Sequence record: NC_025447.1
Reading direction: 5' to 3' (one strand)
Length of the DNA stretch: 64,000 nt
Each line of letters starts with the position of its first letter. Position 1 is the first letter of the stretch. The notes beneath the pieces are model-generated. The model ran no database searches, had not been told where the DNA came from, and was given only the letters and a program-made list of their open reading frames with translations. Positions 4,949-63,233 of this stretch are shown in pieces. The position numbers and the translations under genes were made by a program.

Positions 4949-5781
4949 TTATGTCATTAGAAAAAATAATCATTTCTGAATTCCGAAAGTATATCATGGA
5001 TTGTGATAGAGATGTGCAGCGTAAGTTCAATGAGTACCTTGACAAATATCCGTATTTGATGTTTAATCCGTTTGAAACTGATGATGATTTATATCTTGGT
5101 TTTTACATAGGATTTACTCAACGAATTCTTCATAAAGATGAAATGAAACAATCTGAGATTTGGGTAGAAACTGACTCATCAGAGTCTAATGTTTTTTATC
5201 TTTATACATATTATGCCGAAATTGTTAGAGATACGACACCTGATGGTTGTCTATTTATACAATCGTCTGATATTGAAAGAATATATATCGAACCTGTATC
5301 TTTAGATATGGTTGCCCAGCTTCCAACTATCCAACAGTTAGGTGCAGACGAATTAACTTATTCTGTATTTGAATATCTAGGTAGAGATGATTTGACTCAA
5401 GAAATTGATAAAATGGTTTCTAAATATACTTCATCACTTATTTCAAATGGTAAACTTAAATTAGAATTAATTTTTGAAGATACTAGTATTAATCCAGTAA
5501 GAGGGGTAACAATTGGAAAAGTTACCATACGTGTTGTTTACGATAATGAAGTATTAGGATATATTTCAAAACGTGGACATGATTTATGTATAATTAGTAC
5601 ATTCGTTGTTTCTCGTAAAAAATGGAATGATTTAATGCAAAAAATCGTGGACGGTAGTAAAATTCGTGATATAATATGTAATGACATGGTAATTATTAAT
5701 CCTGATGTTGACTGTGATGTATATTTTCCAGTTCCTGGATTTACACGAGAAAACTTTAGTAAATTGAAGGATAAGAAATGA
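4945..5781 (+). CDS. hypothetical protein
   Basis: 278-aa ORF coupled to neighbours. Confidence 0.8.
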   Translation: MIMSLEKIIISEFRKYIMDCDRDVQRKFNEYLDKYPYLMFNPFETDDDLYLGFYIGFTQRILHKDEMKQSEIWVETDSSESNVFYLYTYYAEIVRDTTPDGCLFIQSSDIERIYIEPVSLDMVAQLPTIQQLGADELTYSVFEYLGRDDLTQEIDKMVSKYTSSLISNGKLKLELIFEDTSINPVRGVTIGKVTIRVVYDNEVLGYISKRGHDLCIISTFVVSRKKWNDLMQKIVDGSKIRDIICNDMVIINPDVDCDVYFPVPGFTRENFSKLKDKK

Positions 5782-11490: not shown

Positions 11491-11580
<90 letters not shown>

Positions 11581-11584
11581 ATAT

Positions 11585-11680
<96 letters not shown>

Positions 11681-11689
11681 CTAAAAACC

Positions 11690-11854
11690 ATGACGCATGA
11701 AGAATGGATGAATGATATTAATTTTAGATATTCGGGTATCGGTAGTTGGCGAAAATATCATTGGGAAATTATTTCAGACCCAGCAGAATACGATAAACTT
11801 ATAAACCATGAAGTATATCCGTGGTTCTTTATTGAAATAATGGTACGAATATGA
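11690..11854 (+). CDS. MTHEEW microprotein (54 aa)
   Basis: Manually translated; tandem duplicate of the next gene. Confidence 0.8.
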   Translation: MTHEEWMNDINFRYSGIGSWRKYHWEIISDPAEYDKLINHEVYPWFFIEIMVRI

Positions 11855-12011
11855 CGCATGAAGAATGGATGAATGACATTAATTTTAGATATTCGGGTAT
11901 CGGTAAATGGCTAAAGTATCATTGGGAATTCATTTCAGAGCCACATATGTATGATAAACTTATCAACGATCCAGCATATGAAATGTACTTAATTGAACTA
12001 CTGGTACGAAT

Positions 12012-12015
<4 letters not shown>
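11851..12015 (+). CDS. MTHEEW microprotein (54 aa)
   Basis: First 18 aa identical to the previous gene; ATGA coupling. Confidence 0.8.
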
Positions 12016-12177
<162 letters not shown>

Positions 12178-12185
12178 AAAAAAAG

Positions 12186-12599
<414 letters not shown>

Positions 12600-12656
12600 C
12601 TAAATAATTCAGTACTGAGGATATTAATATGTTTAAAGATGAACGTCCAGATTTGT

Positions 12657-12694
<38 letters not shown>

Positions 12695-12715
12695 GAATTC
12701 CACAATCAGACGTAT

Positions 12716-13033
12716 ATGGTGTAAGCTACGTCGATGCAATCCAGAACAAGATCTCTGGTACTCTAGGAAGTGGTGAATGTTAACCTAGACGGGTTTGATA
12801 ATTGGACGATAGGCAATTATTACTTGACTAGCAGGTTGAAACTAGAGGTGACAGTCCTTCACCAAACTGGAAAACCGGATGGACTTTTATTTAAAAGGGT
12901 AAGGCGTGGAAATATGTTTACAGAAGTTGCTTTTAGTAGCCTGTACGCCCCACGACAAGGTAGCCGAAAGGTAAGTTAAAACGGGTGGTTATAAAGCTGA
13001 ATTAACAGCGGCGTTTAAAAGCGTCACCATCCA
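12716..13033 (+). ncRNA. candidate structured ncRNA, about 315 nt, with tRNA-like 3' end
   Basis: Own promoter; ATGGTG/CACCAT closing stem; many hairpins; ends in CCA then T7. Confidence 0.6.
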
Positions 13034-13056
13034 TTTTTTTAATTAAAGTTGGCGAT

Positions 13057-13809
<753 letters not shown>

Positions 13810-13826
13810 TTCACATGATATAGGGA

Positions 13827-14088
<262 letters not shown>

Positions 14089-14096
14089 GAATCTTC

Positions 14097-14498
14097 ATGA
14101 AAAAGAATGACTTGATCAAAATGCTCCAAGAGATTGACGGCAATCCAGAGATTGTTATTTGGAATGGCTATGTCGATGATTATATGAACATCGAAAAAGG
14201 CTTGACTAAAATCACACTAGTCAAAGAAACTGAACAGTTCCTTCTGAACGCATTAGAGCATGAATGGTGCGAACGTAACAAGACATTCGACATTCCAGAA
14301 GACCAACGAACTAAGATTGCAGAACGTGCTAAAGAACTTCATAAGAAGCGTGAATACGATTTCCAGAACCCATATGTTACTGAAGAAGAATTCAATCGCT
14401 GGTACGGAAAAAGAAAGTTGACAAAGTATGTTCTTTCACCTAAACTACGTGGTAAGACTTCTCTTGGTGTATTCAATGCATCTGACTTAGATTACTAA
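14097..14498 (+). CDS. hypothetical protein
   Basis: ORF track; SD AGGA. Confidence 0.8.
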   Translation: MKKNDLIKMLQEIDGNPEIVIWNGYVDDYMNIEKGLTKITLVKETEQFLLNALEHEWCERNKTFDIPEDQRTKIAERAKELHKKREYDFQNPYVTEEEFNRWYGKRKLTKYVLSPKLRGKTSLGVFNASDLDY

Positions 14499-14508
14499 GG
14501 AAAACAAA

Positions 14509-14829
14509 ATGATGTGGTATTCAAATGTACCGTGTGAACCTAAATATATTCAGATTTCACATAATGCACTGAAAGCGTTCTGTGATAATTGCAGTACTAA
14601 AGATTATCACTTCGAAGACTTCAGAACGTTGATTTATGACCATCACTGTCAGCCAGCAACCAAAGATGGTATGTTTGTAATTGAACAATTCTTTCATGGT
14701 AAGGTATTGCAAATTGTTGCTGATTATCTGAAAGCAATGGGATATATTATCAAAGATGATTATCTTGATTTAGAAGGTGAATGCATTGTTGATGGTTATG
14801 ATGGTGTACTGATGAATTGGACATGGTGA
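14509..14829 (+). CDS. hypothetical protein
   Basis: ORF track. Confidence 0.75.
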   Translation: MMWYSNVPCEPKYIQISHNALKAFCDNCSTKDYHFEDFRTLIYDHHCQPATKDGMFVIEQFFHGKVLQIVADYLKAMGYIIKDDYLDLEGECIVDGYDGVLMNWTW

Positions 14830-14833
14830 TGAA

Positions 14834-15136
14834 ATGATTGCAACAATGATGATTGTACTTATCCCAATAGTACTAGTAATTCTAGTGACTTCATATGGTG
14901 CAACCACAACTATTGAAGATCTAAAAACACATTACGCTATCGTCTTTAGTGAAGCACATGAAGACTTTGGTACAGTACTGACCGATAAGACTTATATTGC
15001 AACTAAATGTAAGTACTACCGATTCTGGGAACGTTCTGACAAATACCACTACAGAGATGAGAAAGGCGTGAATCAGTACTTAGACGTACTGGATGCATTC
15101 TTGAAACCTTACTATACAGTAACCGAGGTAAAATAA
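14834..15136 (+). CDS. N-terminally anchored membrane protein
   Basis: Hydrophobic N-terminus. Confidence 0.7.
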   Translation: MIATMMIVLIPIVLVILVTSYGATTTIEDLKTHYAIVFSEAHEDFGTVLTDKTYIATKCKYYRFWERSDKYHYRDEKGVNQYLDVLDAFLKPYYTVTEVK

Positions 15137-15137
15137 C

Positions 15138-15353
15138 GTGAAAGCTAAAGATTTGATTTCAATTTTACAGAAAAACCCAGAAGCAGATATTCTTATTCAT
15201 GCTTCGCCTTATGATGACTATGCGATTGGTAGTTGCGAAACTGCTCATTCATATCAAGCAGGGGACACCGCTGTTGAAGAGTCTGGTGAAGATTTTTCGG
15301 AATCATTTGATGAAGATGGAAAACTCTTAGTACCAGTCATCATTCTCTCATAA
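15138..15353 (+). CDS. hypothetical protein
   Basis: ORF track; GTG start. Confidence 0.7.
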   Translation: MKAKDLISILQKNPEADILIHASPYDDYAIGSCETAHSYQAGDTAVEESGEDFSESFDEDGKLLVPVIILS

Positions 15354-15360
15354 AAGAACG

Positions 15361-15630
<270 letters not shown>

Positions 15631-15632
15631 AA

Positions 15633-15661
15633 TTGACATAACTTTGAATGGAGTGTATTAT
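15633..15661 (+). promoter_or_regulatory. sigma70-type promoter
   Basis: TTGACA-17-TATTAT. Confidence 0.7.
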
Positions 15662-15704
15662 GTTCCAAGAAGAAAACTGGGGTTTTTAACATAACGGGGA
15701 ATGT

Positions 15705-15837
<133 letters not shown>

Positions 15838-15838
15838 G

Positions 15839-15889
<51 letters not shown>

Positions 15890-15895
15890 TAATTA

Positions 15896-15968
15896 GCCGA
15901 CTTAGCTCAGTAGGTAGAGCGTTCCTCTTGTAAGGGAAATGTCACCAGTTCAATTCCGGTAGTCGGCA
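15896..15968 (+). tRNA. tRNA-Thr(UGU)
   Basis: GCCGACT/AGTCGGC, TTCCT-CTTGTAA-GGGAA; no encoded CCA. Confidence 0.92.
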
Positions 15969-27266: not shown

Positions 27267-28232
27267 GTGAAAAAGCTTGATTTAAATACAATTGCCGAAG
27301 AAGTTCTGGATGAATGTTTTTCTAATGAAGAAGTCAACACACTAGAAGCCTTAGATTTCGTTGAAGATAAAGATGAAAATGAAGGTAAAGTACAAAGCAG
27401 TTTCAAATATAATATTACACTTAAGCGACCACCAAATGTTTCCAATGAAGATCTAATTCGTGATATTCAAGCTGGTATCAATGTAAAGAAAAACACTGAA
27501 CTGTTAGTTCGTTACAATTATGGACTTATTATTGATGTAGCAAGTAAATGTACTTGTTATATCCCATTTGAAGATAAGATTTCATATGGTGTTGAGGGGT
27601 TCATGAGAGCACTAAAAACCTTTGATCTTAATAAGAATGTGAAGTTCATTACCTATGCTTCTTCTAGTATTTACATGACAGTTTATAACGAAAGTTCTGA
27701 CGCTAACTATATGGTACACTTCCCACGTTATATGAGTGTTCATAAGATCAAAGTAAAAAGATTCTGTCAGGAATATATGCGTAAACATGGTGTTCGCCCA
27801 ACTCCTGAAATAATCTCAGAGGGTACTGGGATTGAGATTCAGCATGTTAATAACTGTTTGTTATTTCAAAGCGAATACACTTCTCTGGATGCACCATTAG
27901 ACGGTGTTACCGATGGTACACTAGGTGACATTATTCATTCACCTGCTTCTGATTTTAACCTCAATGTTGATAGTATTCGTGCACCTTTACGTTATGCTAT
28001 CAATGAACTGACTAACGAATTGAGTACTAAAGAACGTGAGATTATCCAGCGTGTTCATGGTCTAGGTGAATATGAACCTGAAACGCTTCGTGAGATTGCT
28101 GATAATGGTTTTGTTGATGATAATGGAAAATATGTTAAATCCCGTTCATCAATACATCGAAAGTACAGTGAAGCTATGCAAAAGCTTAAGAAGCTAGTAC
28201 TTGCAAAAGGGTACGAATACGAAGATTTCTAA
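27267..28232 (+). CDS. RpoD/RpoS-like sigma70-family RNA polymerase sigma factor
   Basis: Region 2 (LVRYNYGLI..GFMRALKTFD..KFITYA), region 3 (PTPEII..SLDAP), region 4 (LSTKEREIIQRVHGL..TLREIA). Confidence 0.9.
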   Translation: MKKLDLNTIAEEVLDECFSNEEVNTLEALDFVEDKDENEGKVQSSFKYNITLKRPPNVSNEDLIRDIQAGINVKKNTELLVRYNYGLIIDVASKCTCYIPFEDKISYGVEGFMRALKTFDLNKNVKFITYASSSIYMTVYNESSDANYMVHFPRYMSVHKIKVKRFCQEYMRKHGVRPTPEIISEGTGIEIQHVNNCLLFQSEYTSLDAPLDGVTDGTLGDIIHSPASDFNLNVDSIRAPLRYAINELTNELSTKEREIIQRVHGLGEYEPETLREIADNGFVDDNGKYVKSRSSIHRKYSEAMQKLKKLVLAKGYEYEDF

Positions 28233-28234
28233 AG

Positions 28235-28265
28235 AAAAAAGGTTGGCTTATGCCAACCTTTTTTT
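28235..28265 (+). terminator. intrinsic (bidirectional-type) terminator
   Basis: A6-GGTTGGC-TTAT-GCCAACC-T7. Confidence 0.85.
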
Positions 28266-28299
28266 ATGGGATGAAGTAAAAGTTTGTGATATAATTATC

Positions 28300-28780
28300 T
28301 TGTACAATTCTGTTGGCATGATATTCATGTACCTGATCCACTCGAAAACGTAGAGGGCAGTTGAGCAGTCCGACAGTGCGAACAGCAAAAGAAACCCGTT
28401 AGATGTGGGCATAGTTTGAACCCCTCACGGCAATGCGGCTGTATAAAGAACCACGTTAGGATAGCTGGTGGTTCCTTGATAGACATATAAGGATAACACC
28501 TTACGAATTATCTAAGGGAGAGTTATCAAATTTTGTACAGGAAAGTTGCGTCCAGAATTTGAGTACTCACATTAAGTATTTGATTGCATAGATACTTAAT
28601 GAAGATACACTATGTTTAAAAGTGTAGACCGTCATATGAAACTGAAGTAGAGAGAAACAGGATGACCCGCTTTCGCACTCGTTATGAGTAATCTTCAATG
28701 CAATAGCTCTGATACCATCAGCGTCAAATTTCCCTCCTTGTGGGGGGAAGAAAAATCCCTTCCTCAAATCCCGTCAATAT
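28300..28780 (+). ncRNA. candidate large structured ncRNA, about 450-480 nt
   Basis: Extended -10 (TGATATAAT 28287-28295); no credible ORF; at least 9 stems with plus-strand G-U pairs. Confidence 0.6.
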
Positions 28781-28789
28781 TAAAAGTCC

Positions 28790-28818
28790 TTGACAGTTAT
28801 TAATCATTCGCGTAGAAT
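28790..28818 (+). promoter_or_regulatory. sigma70-type promoter
   Basis: TTGACA-17-TAGAAT. Confidence 0.75.
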
Positions 28819-28882
28819 ACGTAGTATTAGAAGCGAACAGACATCTCGAAGAGATGGATGATTAACCATTAAGGAATATCCA

Positions 28883-29092
28883 ATGAATTCAGTAATCTTT
28901 TTAGTAGTCGCTTTCTCTGTTAATTCCGGTATACAAATAACCCCAATGAATTCCATGAATCAATGCATAGCAGTACGTGATAGTACATACGAACAAGTAA
29001 ACAAAGATATTTGGATTACAGTTAATAAAGAACAAATGTGGTGTTACAATAGTAATACTAACACAAAGCTTATTGTAGGACAAACTCAATGA
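28883..29092 (+). CDS. small exported hypothetical protein
   Basis: Hydrophobic N-terminus, two Cys. Confidence 0.65.
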   Translation: MNSVIFLVVAFSVNSGIQITPMNSMNQCIAVRDSTYEQVNKDIWITVNKEQMWCYNSNTNTKLIVGQTQ

Positions 29093-29319: not shown

Positions 29320-30108
29320 ATGAGCACTATCGATGAACTGATTCAACGGAATTCAAAATATTACCAACCATCAGAAATTGTGGATAACATTACTAAATCT
29401 GAGTTTGGACCGAACACACGCAAACTCATTCATGTAATGTCACGTGATGGCTTTAAATGTGATTGTTGTGGTGAATCAAATGTAGTATTCACTTTACACA
29501 AGCACAGTACTAAAGAACGTTATAAATTCAGACCTTATGTACTTAAAGGGAAACGCCTTGTACGCATGACGTTAGACCATAATGTACTGGACTGTCTTCA
29601 GGGCGGTAATGATAAAGAGAACATGACTGCATTGTGTGAAGATTGTAACGCATTACGCCAGCATAAGTTTGCTGAGTACAGTGAGTTTAAACACTGGTAT
29701 CATAACGCGGATCGTTCAATCGAGCCTGACGTTAACTACTGCTTCATTGAGTACATTAAGAATGCCAAAGATACATACATTCTTAAATCAATGTCACCTA
29801 TTACCGTGTTTCCTGAGAACCTATTCACTACATTAAAGAATAGTTTTATTGTCGGTGATATTGATGCATTCAAGTATTTTGACAAAGGTGCAAAACATTT
29901 TGAAATTCAATGTCTTAGTACTGCACTATGTAAACTCATTAAAATTTACATAAAAGAGTATTTGGGTATTGACAATGTACGTGTACCAGAGTATACTTTT
30001 TCTATTGAATTCGATTGTGAATCAATTAAAGAGTTTGGAATTCTTTTCAATAAACAAATAGAACTTGCAATTCAAAACGAAATCAAGTACTATACTACTA
30101 ACATTTAA
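29320..30108 (+). CDS. HNH endonuclease-domain protein
   Basis: RDGFKCDCCG..TLDH..GGNDKENMTALCEDCN. Confidence 0.75.
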   Translation: MSTIDELIQRNSKYYQPSEIVDNITKSEFGPNTRKLIHVMSRDGFKCDCCGESNVVFTLHKHSTKERYKFRPYVLKGKRLVRMTLDHNVLDCLQGGNDKENMTALCEDCNALRQHKFAEYSEFKHWYHNADRSIEPDVNYCFIEYIKNAKDTYILKSMSPITVFPENLFTTLKNSFIVGDIDAFKYFDKGAKHFEIQCLSTALCKLIKIYIKEYLGIDNVRVPEYTFSIEFDCESIKEFGILFNKQIELAIQNEIKYYTTNI

Positions 30109-53668: not shown

Positions 53669-54031
53669 ATGAACGGGATAGAATTATCTTTCGTTGGTCA
53701 ATTACTAGTAATGGCGTATACATTTATCTTCTCACTGAATGCATTCGTGTGCATTGGGAAGTACTTCCATAAGCGACCATTATCAAATATATATGATGTA
53801 ATCCAAAAGAGATATAGTCCAGCATATACTGTGTTGGGTACAGTATTCAATTTTGGTTTTATTGTATTAATAATTGGACTGTTCACATCCTCTTTGAATA
53901 CAATAACCTTCGGTCTTATGATATGTTCATTGGTATTAGCCGTAATTATATGTTGTTTAGTACTGCACCTTGTGGTACTATTGTATATAAAGATCTCTGA
54001 AATCCACCAACGTTTGGGTATGAGGAAATAA
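53669..54031 (+). CDS. 3-TM paralog family, array 2
   Basis: IGKYFH; start moved to ATG53669. Confidence 0.75.
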   Translation: MNGIELSFVGQLLVMAYTFIFSLNAFVCIGKYFHKRPLSNIYDVIQKRYSPAYTVLGTVFNFGFIVLIIGLFTSSLNTITFGLMICSLVLAVIICCLVLHLVVLLYIKISEIHQRLGMRK

Positions 54032-54032
54032 T

Positions 54033-54404
54033 ATGAGTTACCGTGAGATATTTTCCATTATTTCAATTATTATGTTCAGTACTGGAACACTGGTATGGTT
54101 ATTATACTTCTTCTGTATTAATCCAGTGTATAATATGTTATGTAATATTAAATCAAGTGCCGGATATATCACTTTTATGGTCTTTATGGGATATTATTGT
54201 CTAAGCATTTTAGGTGTTGTTTTGGTTGTTATATTTGATGTGGGACCAAATAGTGATGGTATGGAAATACATGAATTAATAACCATGTTTGGATGTATGA
54301 TACCAACAGCACTACTGTTTGTAGCTACTGGTAGTGGATTGATAAAATTATATAATTATTTAAAATCCATTCATAATTCCATTCATAATAAGCGTATGTC
54401 ATAA
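54033..54404 (+). CDS. 3-TM paralog family, array 2
   Basis: LLYFFC; tail SIHNSIHN. Confidence 0.75.
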   Translation: MSYREIFSIISIIMFSTGTLVWLLYFFCINPVYNMLCNIKSSAGYITFMVFMGYYCLSILGVVLVVIFDVGPNSDGMEIHELITMFGCMIPTALLFVATGSGLIKLYNYLKSIHNSIHNKRMS

Positions 54405-54405
54405 T

Positions 54406-54434
54406 AAAAATCCAGTACTTGATAGTACTGGATT
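54406..54434 (-). terminator. minus-strand terminator built from two AGTACT sites
   Basis: TCCAGTACT-TGAT-AGTACTGGA with A5 on its left. Confidence 0.7.
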
Positions 54435-54445
54435 AATAAGGAGTT

Positions 54446-55108
54446 ATGATGAAAACAAAATTAGGTTTGTTTTATAAAAATTATTTCGTTAAACAGCGTA
54501 AATTTATAAAAAAATATTTCTCTGGTGAGAAGTCTAGTCCTATAATTTTTAAAAGACCAAGTTATAATACTTACTTAGCTGGTGCTAAACAGTCTAAGAA
54601 ATTTATTACTCTTTTACATAAAAACAAAATTAAAGCTTCTTATGTTGAAACGAGAAGAAACTCATCAATAACTCCTGGTGATTTTATTGAGTACGGATGT
54701 TTCAATATTAAGTACAATGATAATACATACTTTATGGATATTGATTGTAATACATCCAATCTTTTTAACATTGTAGTAAATCCATTAAAACAATATAATG
54801 TTTATGGTGATTCTATTATCAAATTAATCAAAAACAAAGATAGCTTTGATTTTGAAATAAATGTTTTAGATGATAATTTTGACGAAGTACCAGTAAACCC
54901 TGAAATCTGTGATATTTTAAACAGTTTAAAAGGTAGTACCTACAATATATCATCTGATTTAATGTTTCAGTACTCATTAATCCATAAAGATATTGAAAAG
55001 TATATTGAATGCTCCAAAATTTTGAATTATCTTTACGATGAATTTAAAAAGAGTTCTAAAATAACCGCATACACTTTGTACAATATTCCTAAAATGGTGA
55101 ATCTTTGA
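54446..55108 (+). CDS. EExxFQxS-motif family protein (divergent)
   Basis: SSDLMFQYSLIHKD. Confidence 0.7.
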   Translation: MMKTKLGLFYKNYFVKQRKFIKKYFSGEKSSPIIFKRPSYNTYLAGAKQSKKFITLLHKNKIKASYVETRRNSSITPGDFIEYGCFNIKYNDNTYFMDIDCNTSNLFNIVVNPLKQYNVYGDSIIKLIKNKDSFDFEINVLDDNFDEVPVNPEICDILNSLKGSTYNISSDLMFQYSLIHKDIEKYIECSKILNYLYDEFKKSSKITAYTLYNIPKMVNL

Positions 55109-56241
55109 CAAATACAGTACTGGCAACTCCACCGTCTGTAATATATTGTCCAGTACTGTAAATTTGTATACCATCGGTTAAGTAAGTTCTGTATAAAGTT
55201 GCTGTAACATATACGTTATTCATATTCATCTCTATTGGTAGTACACATTTGGTATAGGCCGACACATCTGTTTGTGTACCTATACCTAATTGACCTGCGT
55301 TATCGCCTGTGTTATAACCAGTTGCGTAAACACCTAATGAAGTTATAATATGATTAGAAAAATATGAATAACCCACACTGCTTCTTATTATATCACCTGG
55401 TGCTTGTGTTGTTTGTCTTAACGAAATATATGTTTGTGATGTAGAACCATTTGCTAACTGACCAAAGTATTGTCCACCACCATGATATGCAAATAATTTA
55501 TTAGTACTATTATTACTTGCTATAGCAAAAGCGAAGTAACTTGAGTTTGTTGTATAATCTTTCACCGTATAGGTATTAGTTATTTGAGAACATAACGTGT
55601 ACTTTGAATATAACGTCATGTCGGTTGTACCTACGCCTGATATTGCACCAGTATAATACAATCTCCCATCGGTTCCAATAAATCCTTGCATAAGAAAATT
55701 TGCCAGTATTTTGGATGGTGTTACTCCAGTAGGTACTGTTCCTTGTACAAATGATGAAAGTGAATCGGTACTTCTACCATTTCCCAGTTGTCCATAACTA
55801 CCATAACCCGTATTCCATATCGTGTTGTCTGTACATAATACGCTTAATGCACCTGCACTAACTGCAATTTGTTTTATTGTTTTTCCAAGTGCTGTTATTC
55901 TATCAAACACTATCTTTGCAGAAGCCCACGTTGTTGACTTATCAGTTGATAAACCGAATGATGCACCATTTCCAGCATACCACATCGTATTATCTTTCTT
56001 TTTAATTAATGTTGACTCATACCCGAACCCATAGATCTTCTACGTTTGTATTGCACAAAACCCATTTGGTTTGTGTTATAATATTACCTATACCCATTTG
56101 CCCAAACTCTTGAGAGCCTCTACTGTACAACGTACCATCTGACATAAGGGCAAAAACTGTTGTATCAGATGAAGCTATTTTTGTAACAGAAGGTTGTATG
56201 TTCTTTTTTGATGATGTGATAATTCTTCCAAAGGGTAGCAT
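55089..56241 (-). pseudogene. RCC1/BLIP-II-like repeat protein with MLPF tag, split by a +1 frameshift (or error)
   Basis: 56017..56253 and 55089..55985 fuse at TGG-G-TTC (about 56025-56031); YGQLG motifs. Confidence 0.7.
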
Positions 56242-56280
56242 TGTATCCTCCAAATGTAAATCGTTATTATATTTAGGACA

Positions 56281-56309
56281 AAAAAATGCCAGTACTTTAG
56301 TACTGGCAT
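56281..56309 (-). terminator. terminator with twin AGTACT
   Basis: ATGCCAGTACT/AGTACTGGCAT plus T6 on the minus strand. Confidence 0.8.
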
Positions 56310-56321
56310 AGTTTTATAGTA

Positions 56322-57431
56322 TTATTTCGGCATTGTAATTGCAGACCATGAGTTCGTGGTGATAGGACCTGGTACATACAAAAAAGAACCACAAGCATAA
56401 ATTTGATTATTACCATCAAATACTATACTAAAATGTGCACATGTGTATAATGATGATTTTTCTGGGTTGTAATTATCTAAAGTTAGTGTATTGGTGAATC
56501 TACTCAAACCACCTCCCGAACCATTTCTACCAAATTCACCAGTACTGTATATCTTTCCTTCGGTTGTTGCGTACATATTAACATATGAAGTCGAACTTGA
56601 TTTTGATATTTTATGTATCTTACTATCAATAGGAGTGGAGTTAAATGTAAATGGATATACTTGTGTGTTCGTTGTAATACCGTTACCAAGTTGACCAATA
56701 TATTGCCAACCTGCGTTGTATATATTGCTGGCTGAATAAGCAAGAGTACCAGTACTGTTACCACCAAATAGTTTAACACTTGTTAACCTGCTTACTAGTG
56801 TAGTATACTGTCCGGGACTTACGCCAAGTGAACCATACCCACTGCTCCCGCAACCGAGAAGTTCATTATTTGATGTTAATATTAATGTGTTATTCTGTGT
56901 ACCCAATATATCAAGGACTGTATTAGCTCCGGTATTAACAACTGAAACAAAAGTACTCTGAGCAGTGGAATACCCACCACCGAGTGAATAGTTACCATTC
57001 ATGCCTCTACCATAAACAATCGAACCACTAGCATCAACGTAGTGCATTGTATCTGCACCAATTGATATCATTTTAATATTAGATATATGTGGAAATGAAG
57101 AAGTAACATTTAAACCACCCAACGGAATCATAGTATTTCCTGTGCCTAATTGTGTGGTAACTCCATGCATTATGAATTCTTCACCCTTGAGATAAAGAAT
57201 ATTGTACGCACCAGCCCATGCATCAGTAACACCTTCTGAAATTAATATCCAAGTATTTCTTGTTGCTGTATTTTCAACGTTTAACTGCAAATACGTATTA
57301 ACCCCACAACCATAAAGTGAACCATCGCCATAGAGGACGTACAAATTATCAAGACCGCACAGTACTTTCTTTATCTTTGGTGCTTCAGGTGCAATATTTC
57401 CGTACTTAACCATTCTTGTGAAAGGTAACAT
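56322..57431 (-). CDS. RCC1/BLIP-II-like beta-propeller protein with MLPFxRMxKYGN tag
   Basis: LYGCGVNTYLQL, GNYSLG, IGQLGNG repeats. Confidence 0.8.
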   Translation of the reverse strand: MLPFTRMVKYGNIAPEAPKIKKVLCGLDNLYVLYGDGSLYGCGVNTYLQLNVENTATRNTWILISEGVTDAWAGAYNILYLKGEEFIMHGVTTQLGTGNTMIPLGGLNVTSSFPHISNIKMISIGADTMHYVDASGSIVYGRGMNGNYSLGGGYSTAQSTFVSVVNTGANTVLDILGTQNNTLILTSNNELLGCGSSGYGSLGVSPGQYTTLVSRLTSVKLFGGNSTGTLAYSASNIYNAGWQYIGQLGNGITTNTQVYPFTFNSTPIDSKIHKISKSSSTSYVNMYATTEGKIYSTGEFGRNGSGGGLSRFTNTLTLDNYNPEKSSLYTCAHFSIVFDGNNQIYACGSFLYVPGPITTNSWSAITMPK

Positions 57432-57441
57432 AATTTTCTCC

Positions 57442-58621
57442 TTAAATTTGTGGCAATTGGTATTCAGTTAAAGTCCATGTACCAACAACTGTCCCTACTG
57501 GAGACATACCAGTGTAGTATAATTTCCCATTCACATATGCAAATAATGCATTGTCATTCGCAGCAACCAACGATGTTGACGGATCATAAACTACAGAATT
57601 TGGAAATTGTGCTTGGACGAAAATTGAAGCATTATTAGATGAATTGTTACCAAGCTGTCCATAATTATTATACCCTGTTCCAAAAATACGACTTCCATTT
57701 CTATATAATAATCCCCTAGGATTTTGTGAATATGTTTGTATAAATTCAAAATCGGAAACATTAGTTAATTGTAAATAAGTACTTTGTGGCGTTAAAGATA
57801 TCTTATTAGTATTAGATAGAACACCATTTCCTAATTGTCCGTGAATTTTGTGACCCTACACCATATAGCGGATAAGTATTATCTACATTAAGAACTATAC
57901 CCAACATATTGTTATATGAAATTATATCAACGGGGTACTGGCCTGTAGGAAAACTATACTTTGTCCAACTCGACAAAGTATCAGTAGCAGAACCAGTTAA
58001 CAATGTACCAGTACTAGTTTTACCACATCTCCATGCTGAATTATCATTTTTAATTATCCAAGTTGGACTATTGAAAAATGAACTAACCTTTTTAACATTA
58101 ATATTAACCTGTGTAAATGATGTAAGTGTAGATGAACTACTACCCAACTCATAGGTTGAATTATCACCTATTGCGTAAAGAACACTATCATTTGTTAGTA
58201 AAAACATATTACGAACATTTGGATATATCTCCTTGATATTATCCACATTAAAACCTGAAAAATAAGACGTACAATCAACAAATGTAGTACTTTGAACTGC
58301 ACTAGATGTACCAGTCCAAAGGTTCCAACCTGCATAATAAAATTTATTATCATTGGTCTGAACTAAGCTATATGAAGCATTCCTTGTGCACCAAAAATTT
58401 TTCACATTTTGCATTAAGCGAACCCATTTGGTCTGTGTCGTTGTATTTCCAAGACCGAATATACCAGCATTGTTACCGCCAATACCCCACAAATCACCGT
58501 TCTTATACAGAATCATCAATGTGTTGTTGGTAAAAGCCGATGGTGCTTGCATTTTAATTACACTAGATTCATATATAGGTGCTATATTCCCGTACTTAAC
58601 CATTCTTGCAAAAGGTAACAT
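57442..58621 (-). pseudogene. RCC1-like MLPF-tag protein split by a +1 frameshift (or error)
   Basis: A second frame from 57840 to TAA at 57442 encodes 132 aa starting GQLGNG. Confidence 0.7.
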
Positions 58622-58687
58622 AAATCCCTCCTTTATTTGTTATACTATATTTAATACAAAAAAGAAAAGCCAGTATCAAGTACTGGC
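58622..58687 (-). repeat. array intergenic cassette (terminator, TAAATA/TATAA, SD)
   Basis: Near-identical copies at 59911-59976, 61135-61200, 62354-62417, 63163-63227. Confidence 0.85.
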
Positions 58688-58730
58688 ATTATGTTAATTA
58701 ATAGTGTCTTTCTAAACACATTTCGTGCCT

Positions 58731-59910
58731 TTATTCAGGTAGTACCAATTTCTTCATTGTAACTTGTTGTGTACCTGGACTCTGTTCCTGAAACATAGAC
58801 CCGTTACCACACCAGTACACCTCATTAGTCCCCACTAACGCGTATAACACACCAGAACCACCTTGTACTGAAAATGCATTAACATCTGGTGCAACATCCA
58901 TATCCTCATATTGTACCTGGTGGTAATAAGATCTTTCTGATGCAGTAGTAACAGGCCAACCAAGAGGAACACCACTACCACATGTATAAAGTTTACCATT
59001 CTGTGTCATTGCCATTATAAAATAATTCAAACTGTGATTGTTCATCGACCCAGCATCTGGTATAATACCACTAATTTCGGGAGTAGCACTAAATGGACTC
59101 ATTGTAACCTTCGTGTCTCCATACCCAATTCCTAAACAATAATCAGTGTTTATCCCAGCAGTATATACTCTAATATTACCCTTATTCGATGTAAGTACTG
59201 AAGTCGTCAAATTAGTACATGAAATACCAATAACTGTTCCAGATATATCAGTACTTACTGTAAATGTGGATAGTTTAGATGCACTTGTACCTAGGTTATA
59301 ACTTGCGTTATTACCACATCTGTAATATTGACCATTTTTAACATAATGTAAAGCACCACCAAAGTGTGTACCAGCAATCATAGTAACACCAGTATCAATC
59401 TTAATCGGTGTCGCTTTTGCACCAGAAACACCCAGTTCACCTCCAGTATTACTACCTATCCCGTATAAATCACCATTGCTTAACATAATTAATAAAGTAC
59501 CATTTGAAGCGACAGTCTCAGTAGAAGCTATATCTTGAACTGTAGTAAGGCTTGGTATTGTAGACAATATTGATGTAATATTTGTCCATCCTGGAACAGG
59601 CGATTTGACCACACCAAGGTATCCCATTTGTCCTGCTAAGTAAAATTCTCCTTCAGTCGTAAGTATAATGGTCCCTGCGGATAAACACCAAACATTAGCA
59701 ACTTTATATGGACACTGTATCCATCCATCCATTTTGTAAATACGCAGTACTATCATTTCCTAGCCTATATTGTGCACCATTACCACGTAGATATAAATTG
59801 CCACTATCGAACAACATACCCACATGTGTTGTAGATGTAGCAATCTTCAGTACACCCGAAGGTGCTGGTTTAACATTCCCGTACTTAACCATTCTTGTAA
59901 AAGGTAACAT
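58731..59910 (-). pseudogene. RCC1-like MLPF-tag protein split at (ATGG)3 (or error)
   Basis: 59704..59910 and 58731..59756 fuse by removing 1 or 4 nt at about 59720-59732. Confidence 0.7.
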
Positions 59911-59976
59911 AAATTCCTCCTTTATTCATTATACTATATTTAATACAAAAAGAAATGCCAGTACTTGAGTACTGGC
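59911..59976 (-). repeat. array intergenic cassette
   Basis: GCCAGTACT/AGTACTGGC hairpin, TATTAAATATAGTATAAT, SD. Confidence 0.85.
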
Positions 59977-59982
59977 TTTATG

Positions 59983-61134
59983 TCAATAAACATCCCAAGG
60001 TAATGGTGTCTTTCTAAACCCATACCTAGTTGCGTTCTGCCCATCTCCGGCAATGTATCTACCGGTCCCACACTGATATAATTCAGTACTGCTACATATC
60101 GCACCACCAATAGTACCACTACACCACTGTGTTATATTAGAATATAATATTGGTAAATCACTACATTTGGTATATAATGCAACAGTGGCAGCCCCGCTCG
60201 GACCACCAAACACACTTCGGTTCGAACCCGTGTAATATATGCCGTCTGGACTCATAAATGCAGATGTATAAGTTGTACTGCAATCCACTGGACTTCTTAT
60301 ATTATTAAGATCGCTTGGGTATGCTCTAGCACCATATGTGTATACATTACCAGCAGTAGTAATACCATTACCTAACTGACCATCATTTTGTCCACCACAT
60401 GTAACCAACGATGCAGTACCGGAAACAATTGCAGTAGCATTATACGAAGTACCTATAGCAATAGAAGCACCCGCCCTTTGGGATGGGGTAGGAACTGCGG
60501 CTGCGTTCCCCTGACCTAATTCACCATTGACATTTCTTCCCCATCCATATACCGAGGTGGTATCTAATTGACATAGTACTGTACCATAACTAAACGTATA
60601 TCGTATATCTTTCACAGCCGATGGTAAACCACTAACTTTAGTTGCAACACTAATAACTCCAGAAATACCAGTAACTCCAGCGTTTGCGTTCATATTACGT
60701 CCATATGCGTATAAAGAACCATCAGCAGTTTTAATATGCATCATGCCATCTGTGCAATATAATGCATCGATGCTATCCACTACAACCGCTCCCATACTAG
60801 ACGTTATATCGTTCCACCCAAGCGTTGTAGTACTAGAAATTAAGTTATTTCCGGCGTAAAGTATTCTATTATCATTTGTAACAACTACAGTATAATTGGT
60901 AGTAACGCCAATTAATCTAACATTCTCATGTATCTTAGACCACATTCCTATTGAATTTGTGTTAGCGTCCAGAAATCCCAACTGACCAGCGGTATTATAT
61001 CCAATACCCCACACATCACCTTCACTGTCCAATAACACTTCATGTGAAAAGCCAATCTTAAAATCTTTTATTGTAGGAACTACCGGAACTGGTGCAATAT
61101 TCCCGTACTTAACCATTCTTCCAAAAGGTAACAT
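59983..61134 (-). CDS. RCC1/BLIP-II-like protein with MLPF tag
   Basis: True start ATG61134; GYNTAGQLG, GRNVNGELG, GQNDGQLG. Confidence 0.85.
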   Translation of the reverse strand: MLPFGRMVKYGNIAPVPVVPTIKDFKIGFSHEVLLDSEGDVWGIGYNTAGQLGFLDANTNSIGMWSKIHENVRLIGVTTNYTVVVTNDNRILYAGNNLISSTTTLGWNDITSSMGAVVVDSIDALYCTDGMMHIKTADGSLYAYGRNMNANAGVTGISGVISVATKVSGLPSAVKDIRYTFSYGTVLCQLDTTSVYGWGRNVNGELGQGNAAAVPTPSQRAGASIAIGTSYNATAIVSGTASLVTCGGQNDGQLGNGITTAGNVYTYGARAYPSDLNNIRSPVDCSTTYTSAFMSPDGIYYTGSNRSVFGGPSGAATVALYTKCSDLPILYSNITQWCSGTIGGAICSSTELYQCGTGRYIAGDGQNATRYGFRKTPLPWDVY

Positions 61135-61200
61135 AATTCCCTCCTTATTCATTATACTATATTTAATACAAATAAGAAAGCCAGTATCAAGTACTGGCTT
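61135..61200 (-). repeat. array intergenic cassette
   Basis: Hairpin, TATTAAATATAGTATAAT, AAGGAGGG. Confidence 0.85.
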
Positions 61201-61204
61201 TAAT

Positions 61205-62353
61205 TCATTGTATAAATGACATATCAACTTCGGTATATCTTGTAGTGTACTGCCCAGAACTTCCACCCATTACTAGATTGGAAAAACCAGTATAAAATAA
61301 CTTACCTTCATCTGTGAGAATCAAACTACCGATGTTATTCAGTACTAAACTGTAAGAACTATTAAAATTTTCATAAGACTTGGTATAATAGAACTGATTT
61401 GTAAGATTACCAACACCCAATTGCCCACCAGTGTTAACCCCAGTTGCAAATATTGTAGTCCCAAATCTGAGAATATGTGAAGCCATATTACCAACACAAC
61501 AGTATATATTCTGTACATCCGAATTCAATAAAGTTGGTGTTGTGTATTGCTTAAGTGTTGTGCCTGTGCCGAATTCATTACCATATGATAGTCCATATTG
61601 TGTACCACAAGCGTACAATTTATTATCATCTTTAATAAAAAATGTACTCTGATAACTTACATCGACATCTATAACATTAGTCTGTATTCTAACAACTCCA
61701 GTACTAGCAGTTTGATTGCCTGTCCCTAACTGATAGTAAGTGTTAATACCACAACCCCATAATGTATTATCTTCTTTTAGGTATATGTTACCAACAGCTT
61801 TTTTTACCGATGATATGGCTTCAATCTTAACAAAGGCGTTAAATGAATTTGTATTTGTGCCATTACCAAAAGATGATCTGGTTGATGTGCTGTTTGTTCC
61901 GCAGCAATATAAAGTACCATCAGTTGTTATCAAATTCACTTTAAGATCACTGTAACTACTCATGTATTTTATATCAGAAACATTAATACCACTGGATGTT
62001 ATCCATGAAGTACAATCTGTCCACGTGTTATAATATGCACCTGAACCAGAAAACGCACTCGGACTTCCAGTTATAAACACTTTTCCAGTACCGTCTTCTT
62101 CATATAATTGACAACCACTACTGTTATTTTCCAAAAGGACTCTTTTAACATTAGTCGCACTAAGAATAAATTTACTCGACGCTACACCAGTTCCAGTACC
62201 CTGACTGACTGCCGCTGATGCATACAAATTTTTCGTGTATGTATCATGAAAATACATAGCACTACCGCCGGAATATATTTTAAAACGTGTACTAGGATCA
62301 GGCGGGTTAGGTGCAATATTCCCGTACTTAATCATTCTAACAAAAGGTAACAT
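61205..62353 (-). CDS. RCC1/BLIP-II-like protein with MLPF tag
   Basis: True start ATG62353; GINTYYQLG, GVNTGGQLG. Confidence 0.85.
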   Translation of the reverse strand: MLPFVRMIKYGNIAPNPPDPSTRFKIYSGGSAMYFHDTYTKNLYASAAVSQGTGTGVASSKFILSATNVKRVLLENNSSGCQLYEEDGTGKVFITGSPSAFSGSGAYYNTWTDCTSWITSSGINVSDIKYMSSYSDLKVNLITTDGTLYCCGTNSTSTRSSFGNGTNTNSFNAFVKIEAISSVKKAVGNIYLKEDNTLWGCGINTYYQLGTGNQTASTGVVRIQTNVIDVDVSYQSTFFIKDDNKLYACGTQYGLSYGNEFGTGTTLKQYTTPTLLNSDVQNIYCCVGNMASHILRFGTTIFATGVNTGGQLGVGNLTNQFYYTKSYENFNSSYSLVLNNIGSLILTDEGKLFYTGFSNLVMGGSSGQYTTRYTEVDMSFIQ

Positions 62354-62417
62354 ATTTCCCTCCTTATTCATTATACTATATTTAATACAAATAAGAATGC
62401 TAGTATCAAGTACTGGC
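62354..62417 (-). repeat. array intergenic cassette
   Basis: Same cassette sequence. Confidence 0.85.
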
Positions 62418-62424
62418 CTATATT

Positions 62425-63162
62425 TTAGACTGAATTGTTAGGATAATATCTCCCACGTCCCCATATTATTCGCACAGCACCACCACCAGCAGCCGTATAA
62501 GAAAAATTATCCCATATACTACCACCACCACCATACATCTTACCAGCACCACCACTACCAGCACCACCATTATATGAACCATCGTATCTACCGCCAATAC
62601 CATTAGCACCTTGAACAATGATACCAGTACCACCACCCGTACCAATGAACGAGGTATTATAGAATGCACCACCACCACCGCCGCCGCCAGCACCATTTTC
62701 ACCAGTGATTGCATCTCCGTTACCACCTTTACCAGTGTAGCCACCAGCACCACCACCAATGACTGCACCACCACTTACACCAGCGTTGCCCCCATTACCA
62801 CCACCATCATTAATAGCGTTAGCAGCTTTCCCACCTAGTCCACCAACCCTATATTCACCAGTGAAGCTAACACATAGTTTTTCAGTTCCACGATATAAAC
62901 CGTTTTCAACTGCTGTAGTAGTGTTGGGATGTGTAAGAGAAACACTTAAGTACTCACCACTAGTAACCGGAATATTATTACGCCACGATAAGCCGCCACC
63001 AGCACCACGTTGACCACCCGGCGAAATAACACATACTGATATTTCGGTAACGCCAGCAGGAACTGTAAATTGTGTTGTTCCTATTGTCGTGATTAATTGT
63101 TCACCATCTGGCTTATATTCAATTTTATTCCCGTACTTTACCATTCTTCCAAAAGGTAACAT
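62425..63162 (-). CDS. glycine-rich protein with MLPF tag
   Basis: True start ATG63162; GGG-rich body, GAVRIIW near the C-terminus. Confidence 0.8.
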   Translation of the reverse strand: MLPFGRMVKYGNKIEYKPDGEQLITTIGTTQFTVPAGVTEISVCVISPGGQRGAGGGLSWRNNIPVTSGEYLSVSLTHPNTTTAVENGLYRGTEKLCVSFTGEYRVGGLGGKAANAINDGGGNGGNAGVSGGAVIGGGAGGYTGKGGNGDAITGENGAGGGGGGGAFYNTSFIGTGGGTGIIVQGANGIGGRYDGSYNGGAGSGGAGKMYGGGGSIWDNFSYTAAGGGAVRIIWGRGRYYPNNSV

Positions 63163-63227
63163 ACTTCCTCCTTTATTCATTATACTATATTTAATACAAA
63201 TAAGAAAGCCAGTACTTTGTACTGGCT
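63163..63227 (-). repeat. array intergenic cassette
   Basis: Same cassette sequence. Confidence 0.85.
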
Positions 63228-63233
63228 AAATTA

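Follow-up and report, generated by a model that had tools for sequence, protein, structure and literature searches.

What occupies the unannotated gap that follows the sigma factor gene of Escherichia phage 121Q (KM507819.1; Asteriusvirus, a Rak2-like jumbo myovirus)? The gap, which blastn matches to that phage at 100% identity, lies in a stretch of 64,000 nucleotides (nt) of sequence record NC_025447.1, hereafter the window, whose positions become positions in the phage record when 62000 is added, and it extends from the sigma gene (27267-28232; product with Sigma70 regions 2, 3 and 4) to the next open reading frame (ORF; 28883, gene 168). A first-pass annotation made from the sequence alone had proposed that the gap holds a novel large phage non-coding RNA (ncRNA), and the present analysis agrees, having found strong covariation that includes pseudoknots, no conserved ORF, a promoter of its own and no match in Rfam. 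It is secure that window 28330-28788 on the + strand, designated copy A of the RNA, is a conserved structured non-coding element and not a set of chance stems.

Evidence for a conserved RNA fold

Folding energy is just 1.2 to 1.5 standard deviations below that of dinucleotide-shuffled sequences (z = -1.2 on the + strand and z = -1.5 on the - strand), so that thermodynamics alone is uninformative and would not justify a claim of structure; the evidence is comparative. Pattern scans of IMG/VR and metagenomes, together with a profile search, gave 147 loci that match the family profile, including every Rak2-like jumbo phage of the collection searched, and 95 distinct full-length homologs were collected. 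Copy A, the sole copy in the window, matches the profile over its full length (343 bits, E 4e-103) and carries the invariant blocks CGGCAAUGCGGC, GAUAGACAUAUA, GACCGU, AGAAAC and ACCCGC. By blastn, the core (about 28332-28783) is ~70% identical across jumbo phages that infect Escherichia, Klebsiella, Salmonella, Erwinia, Serratia, Yersinia, Cronobacter, Pectobacterium and Xanthomonas, and the similarity does not extend into the flanks. In pairwise and five-way alignments, invariant single-stranded blocks alternate with helices whose two strands change together.

Covariation was scored for all 89,253 column pairs by mutual information with average product correction, no structure being assumed. 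In the first run (42 sequences) most of the top pairs were 100% Watson-Crick or G-U, with 2-4 pair types, and outlined helices; with 52 sequences, the ten best-scoring column pairs all fall in the proposed fold, as do 27 of the first 30. Across the 95 homologs, 84% of the cells of the whole fold are canonical, versus 39-44% after displacement of the 3' partners by 1-3 columns, and compensatory double changes occur in 74 of 104 pairs. Eleven helices are 88-100% canonical, six of them (P2, P3, P3a, P10, P11 and P12) at 98-100% and five (P1, P5, P8, P9 and P13) at 88-90%. RNAalifold, given 30 diverse 3' domains, yields P8, P9, P11, P12 and P13, and both sides have changed in at least one sequence for 25 of its 32 predicted pairs. 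The first-pass annotation had proposed collecting homologs and examining them for covariation; under mutual-information scoring of 52 sequences, pairs of the fold do covary strongly.

The strand and the non-coding nature of the element follow from the same alignments. Cells with G-U far outnumber cells with A-C in the best helices (P8, 84 versus 17; P11, 51 versus 0; P12, 29 versus 0; P15, 178 versus 12), and this excess in well-aligned helices indicates an RNA read from the + strand, as the first-pass annotation had argued from G-U pairs that fit that strand only. Every reading frame of every homolog is interrupted by stop codons (minimum 2-5 per sequence), which excludes the translated small ORF that had been named as a refuting alternative.

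Of the ten stems listed in the first-pass annotation, nine are conserved helices: GAACCAC/GTGGTTC is P5, GATAAC/GTTATC is P6, CCTTA/TAAGG is P6a, AAATTTTG/CAGAATTT is P7, CATTAAGTAT/ATACTTAATG is P8, TACAC/GTGTA is P9, GTCAT/ATGAC is P10, ACTC/GAGT is P13 and TTCCCTCC/GGGGGGAA is P15. The tenth, CTGAT/ATCAG, proved to be confined to copy A. Missing from that list were P1, P2, P3, P11, P12 and all three tertiary pairings.

Architecture of the RNA

All features of the fold lie on the + strand. The 5' domain opens with P1 (28332-28360), a hairpin formed by 28333-35:28358-60, 28338-39:28356-57 and 28341-43:28353-55 around the conserved loop GAAAAnGUA (90% canonical; 7 of 8 pairs compensatory). After a conserved UGAG comes the 3-bp hairpin P2 (28365-28379; 28365-67:28377-79), which is 100% canonical and whose pair 28366:28378 exchanges C-G, U-A and A-U. 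The P3 domain (28382-28442) comprises P3 (28382-86:28438-42; 99% canonical), P3a (28396-99:28427-30; 98% canonical) and a variable hairpin, P3b (28402-26), recognized by eye in six sequences and left out of the counts; it also holds the invariant block CGGCAAUGCGGC (28428-39), which served as a search pattern that recovered homologs. Within this block, invariant GCAAUG (28431-36) could pair with CGUUGC, the P10 5' strand (28630-35), in most copies, copy A excepted; such pairing may reflect an alternative conformer or be coincidental.

P5 (28448-28474; 28448-54:28468-74) is 88% canonical with compensatory changes in 7 of 7 pairs, and it contains the top-ranked covarying pairs. It is followed by the invariant single-stranded junction CUnGAUAGACAUAUArG (GAUAGACAUAUA, 28476-28491) and by P6 (28492-97:28522-27), which encloses P6a (28499-503:28513-17) in a module spanning 28492-28527 that is succeeded by the invariant UAAGGGAG. 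Since MAFFT aligns P6 and the adjoining loop contact poorly, these were assessed sequence by sequence: the P6 partners stay complementary with differing letters (GATGCA/TGCATC, GATCGCA/TGCGATT, GATACTAC/GTAGTATC and others), and P6a is nearly invariant, so that covariation neither supports nor refutes it. The loops of P5 and P6a face each other in a kissing contact (28460-63:28509-12) whose sequences, compared by eye, differ from paralog to paralog and remain complementary (AUCGUU/AACGAU, UACAU/AUGUA, AUACU/AGUAU, GAUA/UAUC). Hetero-oligomers joined through these loops were considered and rejected, because the P5 loop of each paralog fits its own P6a loop and not that of another paralog.

The P7 module (28528-28560) consists of an 8-bp stem (28528-35:28553-60) and a 17-nt conserved loop, UACAnnAAAGuUgCGUC; its alignment register is poor, and 68-81% of its cells are canonical. 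In several paralog clades the tip of P13 bears a duplicate of this module, an A/U stem with a 17-nt conserved loop ending in CGUCC (e.g., L378:2880-2915, a locus of the collection), which suggests that it is a modular tertiary or protein-binding element.

The 3' domain is the part retained by the most divergent members. P8 (28570-28601; 28570-79:28592-601) is 89% canonical, with 10 of 10 pairs compensatory, and its 12-nt loop forms pseudoknot PK1, in which 28583-89 pairs with 28698-28704 (AUGCAAU). PK1 is 98.5% canonical and has 7 of 7 compensatory pairs versus 0-1 in slid controls; a search for partners of the P8 loop that relies on no alignment peaks at 28698-703, with a mean run of 7.9 versus 3.8 +/- 1.2. 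P9 (28606-10:28622-26; 90% canonical, 5 of 5 pairs compensatory) is followed by invariant GACCGU (28627-32), the two together spanning 28606-28632. In the core pseudoknot (28631-28697), P10 (28631-35:28662-66) crosses P12 (28643-47:28693-97) and P11 (28650-54:28670-74); these helices are 100% (P10 and P11) and 99.6% (P12) canonical, with compensatory changes. The same core contains the hairpin P13 (28677-80:28686-89), recovered by RNAalifold, and the invariant junctions AGAAAC and ACCCGC. Three tertiary pairings are thus supported: the P8-loop pseudoknot, the P10/P11/P12 pseudoknot and the P5/P6a kissing loop.

Two repeats in the 3' tail that change alike

Downstream of the core, 28711-28727 holds the P14 region and the repeat R1 (AUCAGCGUCAA, 28717-27). 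P14 reads GAYGn/nCGUC in other copies, a pattern discerned by eye; in copy A alone, the CTGAT/ATCAG stem could form an alternative hairpin (28709-13:28717-21), and other copies form a different short hairpin. Next is the P15 hairpin (28730-28749; UUCCCUCC/GGGGGGAA), in which the G-run of the 3' arm is invariant and the 5' arm changes between C and U only; the G-U preponderance given above is the signature of a + strand RNA hairpin. The tail ends with R2 (AUCCCGUCAA, 28768-28777), a direct repeat of R1, and sequence conservation stops just past it, at about 28785.

The variable positions of the two 10-nt repeats are identical in 95 of 95 homologs, copy A included. Positions 28718/28769 are UU in 60 sequences and CC in 35, positions 28722/28772 are CC in 90 and UU in 5, and positions 28723/28773 are GG in 93 and UU in 2. 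On a tree built without the R1 and R2 columns, these correspond to at least nine independent joint substitutions (at least 6, plus 2, plus 1) and no discordant one. Column covariation, ungapped complement scans and flank scans found no consistent complementary partner of R1 or R2 within the element or 1.5 kb. The 5' half of R2 has weak complementarity to the P15 G-run. A possible 9-nt complementarity of R2 to the universal region of 16S ribosomal RNA near positions 917-925 is contradicted by the joint G-to-U change of the RaK2-type copies. The pattern is the signature expected of two sites obliged to be alike, as opposed to the strands of a helix.

An intrinsic terminator lies between R1 and P15 in 42 of 92 copies, not including copy A. 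Such a terminator ahead of P15 and R2 implies either two RNA isoforms or a separate role for the tail.

Transcriptional context of copy A

The insulation of the gap by a terminator and the next promoter, and its possession of an extended -10 element, were described correctly by the first-pass annotation. The intrinsic terminator of the sigma gene, a hairpin (GGTTGGC/GCCAACC) with a T-run at 28235-28263 (+ strand), is annotated as a terminator in phage G17; it lies upstream of the RNA gene and outside the RNA. The predicted promoter of the RNA (28268-28295, + strand) has a weak -35-like GGGATG followed by an extended -10 (TGA TATAAT, 28287-28295), and transcription would start near 28301. A non-conserved 5' leader (28300-28331, + strand) includes a small hairpin (CATGA 28317-21/TCATG 28325-29); leader sequence varies among paralogs, and a hairpin is nonetheless present in the leader of copy C and of an island copy. 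Beyond the element, a promoter for the downstream early genes, TTGACA-17-TAGAAT (28790-28818, + strand), also lies outside the RNA. We found no intrinsic terminator on the + strand between the element and 32.5 kb, and the 3' end of copy A is accordingly undefined.

Five near-consensus sigma-70 promoters (TTGACA-16/17-TATAAT-like) lie on the + strand within 3.3 kb downstream, at window positions 28790, 29969, 30615, 30963 and 32021, which suggests that the early region is transcribed by host polymerase. Five tRNA genes identified with Rfam are clustered at 11491-15968, about 12-17 kb upstream of the RNA. Near 55 kb of the window (region about 54000-64000) the GC skew reverses its sign, for which a switch of coding strand is the likely cause; there is no shift at the RNA locus (28.5 kb).

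A multi-copy family in jumbo phages

Copy A is not alone in its genome. When a near-identical genome was scanned from end to end with the profile, four full-length copies emerged, all on the same strand, and each Asteriusvirus genome has four dispersed same-strand copies, which in 121Q lie at 90.3 kb (A), 192.8 kb (B), 247.5 kb (D) and 326.7 kb (C); in related genera, blastn finds up to five matching places per genome record. The neighbours differ from copy to copy. Copy B adjoins two unknown genes and a dam methylase gene, in a position conserved as far as RaK2; copy D adjoins a structural-protein gene; and copy C lies beside endonuclease VII and baseplate hub genes, both on the minus strand, so that copy C must be its own transcription unit. 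Copy C indeed has a promoter, GAGACA-16-TGcTATAAT, and a canonical hairpin with a U-run after its core. The layout GRGACA-N16-TGnTATAAT recurs upstream of copies B, C and D, with a weaker form at A, and 80 of 92 distinct copies have an extended -10 at most 130 nt upstream, versus 5% of random background windows.

The tree of copies resolves several paralog clades, each with many genomes, so that the duplications are old and each paralog has been retained across genera. No conserved partner protein occurs beside the phage copies; their neighbours follow the synteny of each paralog position.

HNH endonuclease genes that belong to a single sequence cluster occur within 4 kb of copies of several paralog clades (19 loci; examples are window 29320-30108, gp170, and 121Q 246019-246630, gp513), and are probably free-standing homing endonucleases beside a highly conserved target. 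In deposited genomes the element is left blank, is marked as a repeat ('repeat_region' in the UE-S1 record) or is overlain by small hypothetical coding sequences (CDS), as in records such as OR699182.1 and PQ330092.1; in 121Q, gene 516 (247799-247954, minus strand) is annotated inside copy D. In view of the stops in all frames across homologs, these CDS calls inside RNA copies are probably false.

Copies in bacterial islands

The RNA also resides in enterobacterial chromosomes. Two loose sequence patterns gave mostly chance matches among those listed, and a scan of genome contigs made in this way had no true hit among its listed matches. Of 5,426 complete E. coli genomes searched, however, two contain a match, and that of strain LR-29-1 (L476:7000-7547, equivalent to NZ_AP027515.1 about 3478767-3479314, complement) is an end-to-end profile match of 338 bits. 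It sits in an integrative island beside ffs, with a single annotated ORF of 44 aa in the surrounding 2 kb; the island also holds a split integrase, IS3, a DNA invertase and the candidate defence system PDC-M45. The copy has a promoter, GGGATGAA...TGTGATATAAT, whose TGTGATATAAT element resembles the promoter of copy A, as well as the internal terminator, P15 and R2, and its helices are kept through compensatory changes. Its similarity to one paralog of Serratia phage BF (~80% identity) is limited to the element, and the island proteins that flank the RNA have no homologs in these jumbo phages.

Seven metagenome loci repeat this arrangement, in which the RNA lies 0.7-1.5 kb upstream of a membrane-protein gene on the same strand, with no called gene in the intervening 0.7-1.5 kb. 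The predicted membrane protein (about 260-340 aa, no Pfam family; L476:8257-9030, with homologs at L397:6290-7273, L392:10159-11019 and others) is always present downstream of island copies and is widespread in Enterobacterales (Klebsiella, Raoultella, Yersinia, Enterobacter, Cronobacter and Pectobacterium), and in some islands it is accompanied by a mere decayed remnant of the RNA. The islands encode integrases or large serine recombinases together with a DNA invertase; their defence cargo is PDC-M45 (DuOB, DUF488, mSLOG-DUF4326) or Lamassu in those with the RNA, and SMODS and PDC-M45 in sister islands with a remnant only. In the Klebsiella sister islands the core is lost and a decayed tail is all that is left. 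Pfam detects no reverse transcriptase among the island neighbours, and no replication or packaging genes were seen in the islands.

Another conserved non-coding block, CGAATTAACTACC ... GTGAGTACTTGATAG, is about 110 nt long, contains inverted repeats and precedes the membrane-protein gene in islands of E. coli, Klebsiella and Yersinia (L476:7565-7655; L477:3480-3567 and 5249-5341; L483:5240-5348). In Klebsiella it is duplicated and flanks a 498-aa gene on both sides. This block could be another RNA or a cassette boundary.

Proposed function and alternatives

With moderate confidence, we interpret copy A as one of four paralogous, independently transcribed, trans-acting large ncRNA genes, probably engaged in phage-host conflict. 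Host RNA polymerase would transcribe the RNA from the start of infection, the host-type promoter making early transcription probable. The sequence, about 430-480 nt long across the family, folds into a 5' domain (P1-P7) with the P5/P6a loop contact and a 3' core (P8-P13) locked by two pseudoknots, followed by the tail R1-P15-R2, and its junctions are rich in invariant unpaired nucleotides. The folded RNA would act in trans as a self-contained molecule, neither as an mRNA leader nor through a neighbouring gene, and its invariant core would bind or act on a partner not encoded beside it. Because the same RNA and promoter type occur in anti-phage defence islands, that partner is most likely a host component or a widely shared phage component. 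In the phage the role might be counter-defence or takeover, and in the islands that of a decoy or the same activity; given the genomic company of defence islands, a role in phage-host conflict is the most likely. Candidate modes of action are a binder or sponge, an oligomeric particle and a ribozyme, and the scaffold or decoy role envisaged by the first-pass annotation is possible. That the RNA moves between mobile elements without a protein partner is the most economical reading.

Several observations weigh against this interpretation. Genomic context is the entire argument for a conflict role; the start site, 3' end, stability and timing of every member are predictions from sequence; and the binding partner, ligand and reaction are postulates. 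Copy A lacks its own terminator and could form the 5' portion of a long early transcript. R1 and R2 evolve in concert, which points to a process outside the favoured explanation, and a terminator inside the conserved unit in 42 of 92 copies fits poorly with a simple single-RNA picture. Loss of the core from the Klebsiella sister islands implies that the RNA is dispensable there.

The behaviour of R1 and R2 is the starting point for two reaction-based proposals. The bolder is that the RNA is an RNA-only conflict module of phages and defence islands, possibly catalytic and dependent on identical R1 and R2 sites, with a mechanism such as cleavage/ligation or template-jump copying of R1-P15-R2, which the phage would use against the host and which the islands would mimic against the phage; we regard it as doubtful, the weaker candidate beside the interpretation just given. 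To a related view, that the RNA or its DNA is copied or processed in a reaction needing two identical sites, we assign a somewhat lower likelihood, and because of the R1 = R2 rule a reaction-based mechanism (ribozyme or template jumping) is a serious minority possibility. The reaction might be polymerase template jumping, two-site ribozyme cleavage/ligation or a site-specific recombination at core sites with loss of the P15 segment, with the large fold as its machine or scaffold. The joint substitutions, the missing complementary partner and the occurrence of the element in unrelated contexts, phages and islands, accord with such a reaction, as do the invariant unpaired nucleotides at multi-helix junctions combined with pseudoknots, which are typical of ribozymes. 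However, cleavage or copying would be hypothetical, no Rfam ribozyme or intron family is matched, no reverse transcriptase appears among the island neighbours by Pfam or in the annotation of the parts of 121Q inspected, and the synteny of the paralogs across genera argues against recent mobility. It is improbable that the four or five elements are instead replication origins whose transcript primes the leading strand through a persistent RNA-DNA hybrid, for which T4 oriF and oriG, and the structured RNA at the ColE1 origin (RNA II), are precedents. The copies are spaced every 55-110 kb on one strand, each with a host-type promoter, the phage is annotated with a T4-like replisome, a UvsW-like helicase and RNase H, the invariant G6 run beside the C/U-rich P15 arm recalls the G-run/C-run contact of ColE1 RNA II, and an origin on an island could serve to exploit a helper phage. 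Yet the GC skew is unchanged at 28.5 kb, three covarying tertiary pairings with conserved unpaired bases far exceed known origin transcripts, T4 origins are not known to share a comparable conserved element, and the islands lack visible replication or packaging genes.

A cis-acting element that modifies its own polymerase, in the manner of processive antitermination by HK022 put RNA, or that insulates neighbouring units would account for the terminator right after the core, for the promoter after each element and for the order promoter, element, internal terminator (42 of 92 copies), tail and next promoter; in other genera the element is followed by a TGAAC-type motif, which corresponds to the middle promoters described for CBB and GAP32 (PMC5259590). 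Against this, copy C has opposite-strand genes only for 1.3 kb downstream, and the island copies precede 0.7-1.5 kb devoid of called genes; moreover, the element is 6-7x larger than put RNA and the downstream units each have a strong promoter of their own, so that we think this explanation a little less probable even than the origin. Joint action with the adjacent phage sigma factor, for instance as a 6S-like decoy for RNA polymerase, was suggested to the first-pass annotation by the position of copy A directly after the sigma gene, and is very improbable. The sigma neighbour occurs at copy A only, in Asteriusvirus only; the three other 121Q copies adjoin unrelated genes, and copies in other genera and in bacterial islands, including the E. 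coli island that has the RNA and no such sigma gene, are likewise not beside one. Nothing matches 6S, and the fold does not take the form of a long duplex opened by a central bubble. The sigma neighbourhood, being peculiar to one copy, is an accident of that copy's position. Least credible of all, to the point of being negligible, is the view implicit in several GenBank records that the region encodes small proteins. Some records place three or four 'hypothetical protein' CDS over it, and 121Q gene 516 lies inside copy D, but the stops in each frame of each homolog, indels that are not multiples of three, substitutions that track base pairing and not codons, and a candidate ORF after the G-run that shifts frame between copies and has no start codon in copy A all contradict it.

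Comparison with known RNAs

The first-pass annotation could not assign the RNA to a known family, and an Infernal-type search against Rfam, with ROOL, GOLLD, RNase P, tmRNA and 6S among the families compared, led to the same result. In Rfam 15, copy A had no match at gathering scores and, at E<=10, terminator-like small RNA noise only, and 13 divergent copies (14 copies in all) had no consistent match; no covariance-model score reached gathering for ROOL, GOLLD, OLE, raiA, HEARO (IscB omega RNA) or other Rfam 15 families. RNase P, tmRNA, 6S, ROOL, GOLLD, group I and II introns, HEARO and hairpin and hammerhead ribozymes are ruled out by this search. Superficial motif likenesses (AGAAACA, GUC, CUGAU...GAAA and RNase P-like CAGUGC..ACAG) disagree with the helix topology. 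For tmRNA, ARAGORN finds no candidate in 28100-29000, and there is neither a tRNA-like domain nor a tag ORF; for 6S RNA, the fold is multi-domain with pseudoknots and no covariance model matches; for group I and II introns, again unmatched by covariance models, the element is intergenic, with a terminator ahead of it and a promoter after it, and lacks a domain V-like hairpin. Our literature search found no description of the RNA. The nearest are ncRNAs detected by RNA-seq in the jumbo phage PA5oct, a distant relative of the Rak2 group, of which ncRNA002 (451 nt, about 5% of phage reads) is likewise an abundant unannotated ncRNA of ~450 nt (PMC7318152); by nhmmer, neither PA5oct ncRNA001 nor ncRNA002 has sequence homology to the family profile. 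With no match in Rfam 15, no published description found and annotations that are blank, a repeat or small hypothetical CDS, we consider this a new class of RNA.

Its wider significance lies partly in evolution, for the RNA has crossed between giant phages and the defence islands of their hosts without a protein partner, and the like-with-like change of R1 and R2 is an evolutionary signature outside known RNA pairing rules. Phages that grow on E. coli K-12 offer a genetically tractable entry into the unknown biology of jumbo coliphages that are therapeutic candidates, and the annotation of dozens of deposited genomes is corrected.

Among known systems, ROOL and GOLLD (cryo-electron microscopy, PMC12286853) are alike in being very large structured ncRNAs of phages or prophages with no obligate protein neighbour, and in having loop-loop contacts that may be intra- or intermolecular. 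The family described here differs in giving no cmscan match to them (gathering, E<=10), in its four copies per Asteriusvirus genome, mostly with promoters of their own, in its presence in enterobacterial defence islands, and in the location of copy A away from the tRNA cluster. In the prohead RNA (pRNA) of phi29, two loops are kept complementary by covariation while they drift, as are the P5 and P6a loops here; pRNA, however, is 174 nt long, single-copy, free of pseudoknots and derived from small podophages, no Rfam match connects the two, and an intermolecular contact or a prohead location for the present RNA would be hypothetical. HK022 put RNA invites comparison at copies A, B and D, which have same-strand genes downstream, whereas copy C has opposite-strand genes only.

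The obligation of two short sequences to match each other or a common partner, in mobile elements in conflict, is loosely reminiscent of the DRT2 defence ncRNA, a template for rolling-circle reverse transcription that is bounded by matching motifs, and of the P4 CI and P1 c4 immunity RNAs, which have duplicated target sites. The difference is that no complementary seed was found here and that the island neighbours, by Pfam, include no reverse transcriptase. In its general construction, with covarying helices, pseudoknots and invariant unpaired junctions within 350-450 nt, the RNA resembles RNase P RNA, tmRNA and group I introns, from which it is distinguished by having no P4-type long-range helix joining its ends and no exon context, and, in the case of group I introns, by a helix order unlike the P3-P8/P7 topology. 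Very few bacterial or phage RNAs longer than 400 nt with such conserved tertiary structure are known, and those that are, namely RNase P, group I and II introns, tmRNA, OLE, ROOL, GOLLD and omega RNAs, have each proved to be a machine or to embody a new principle.

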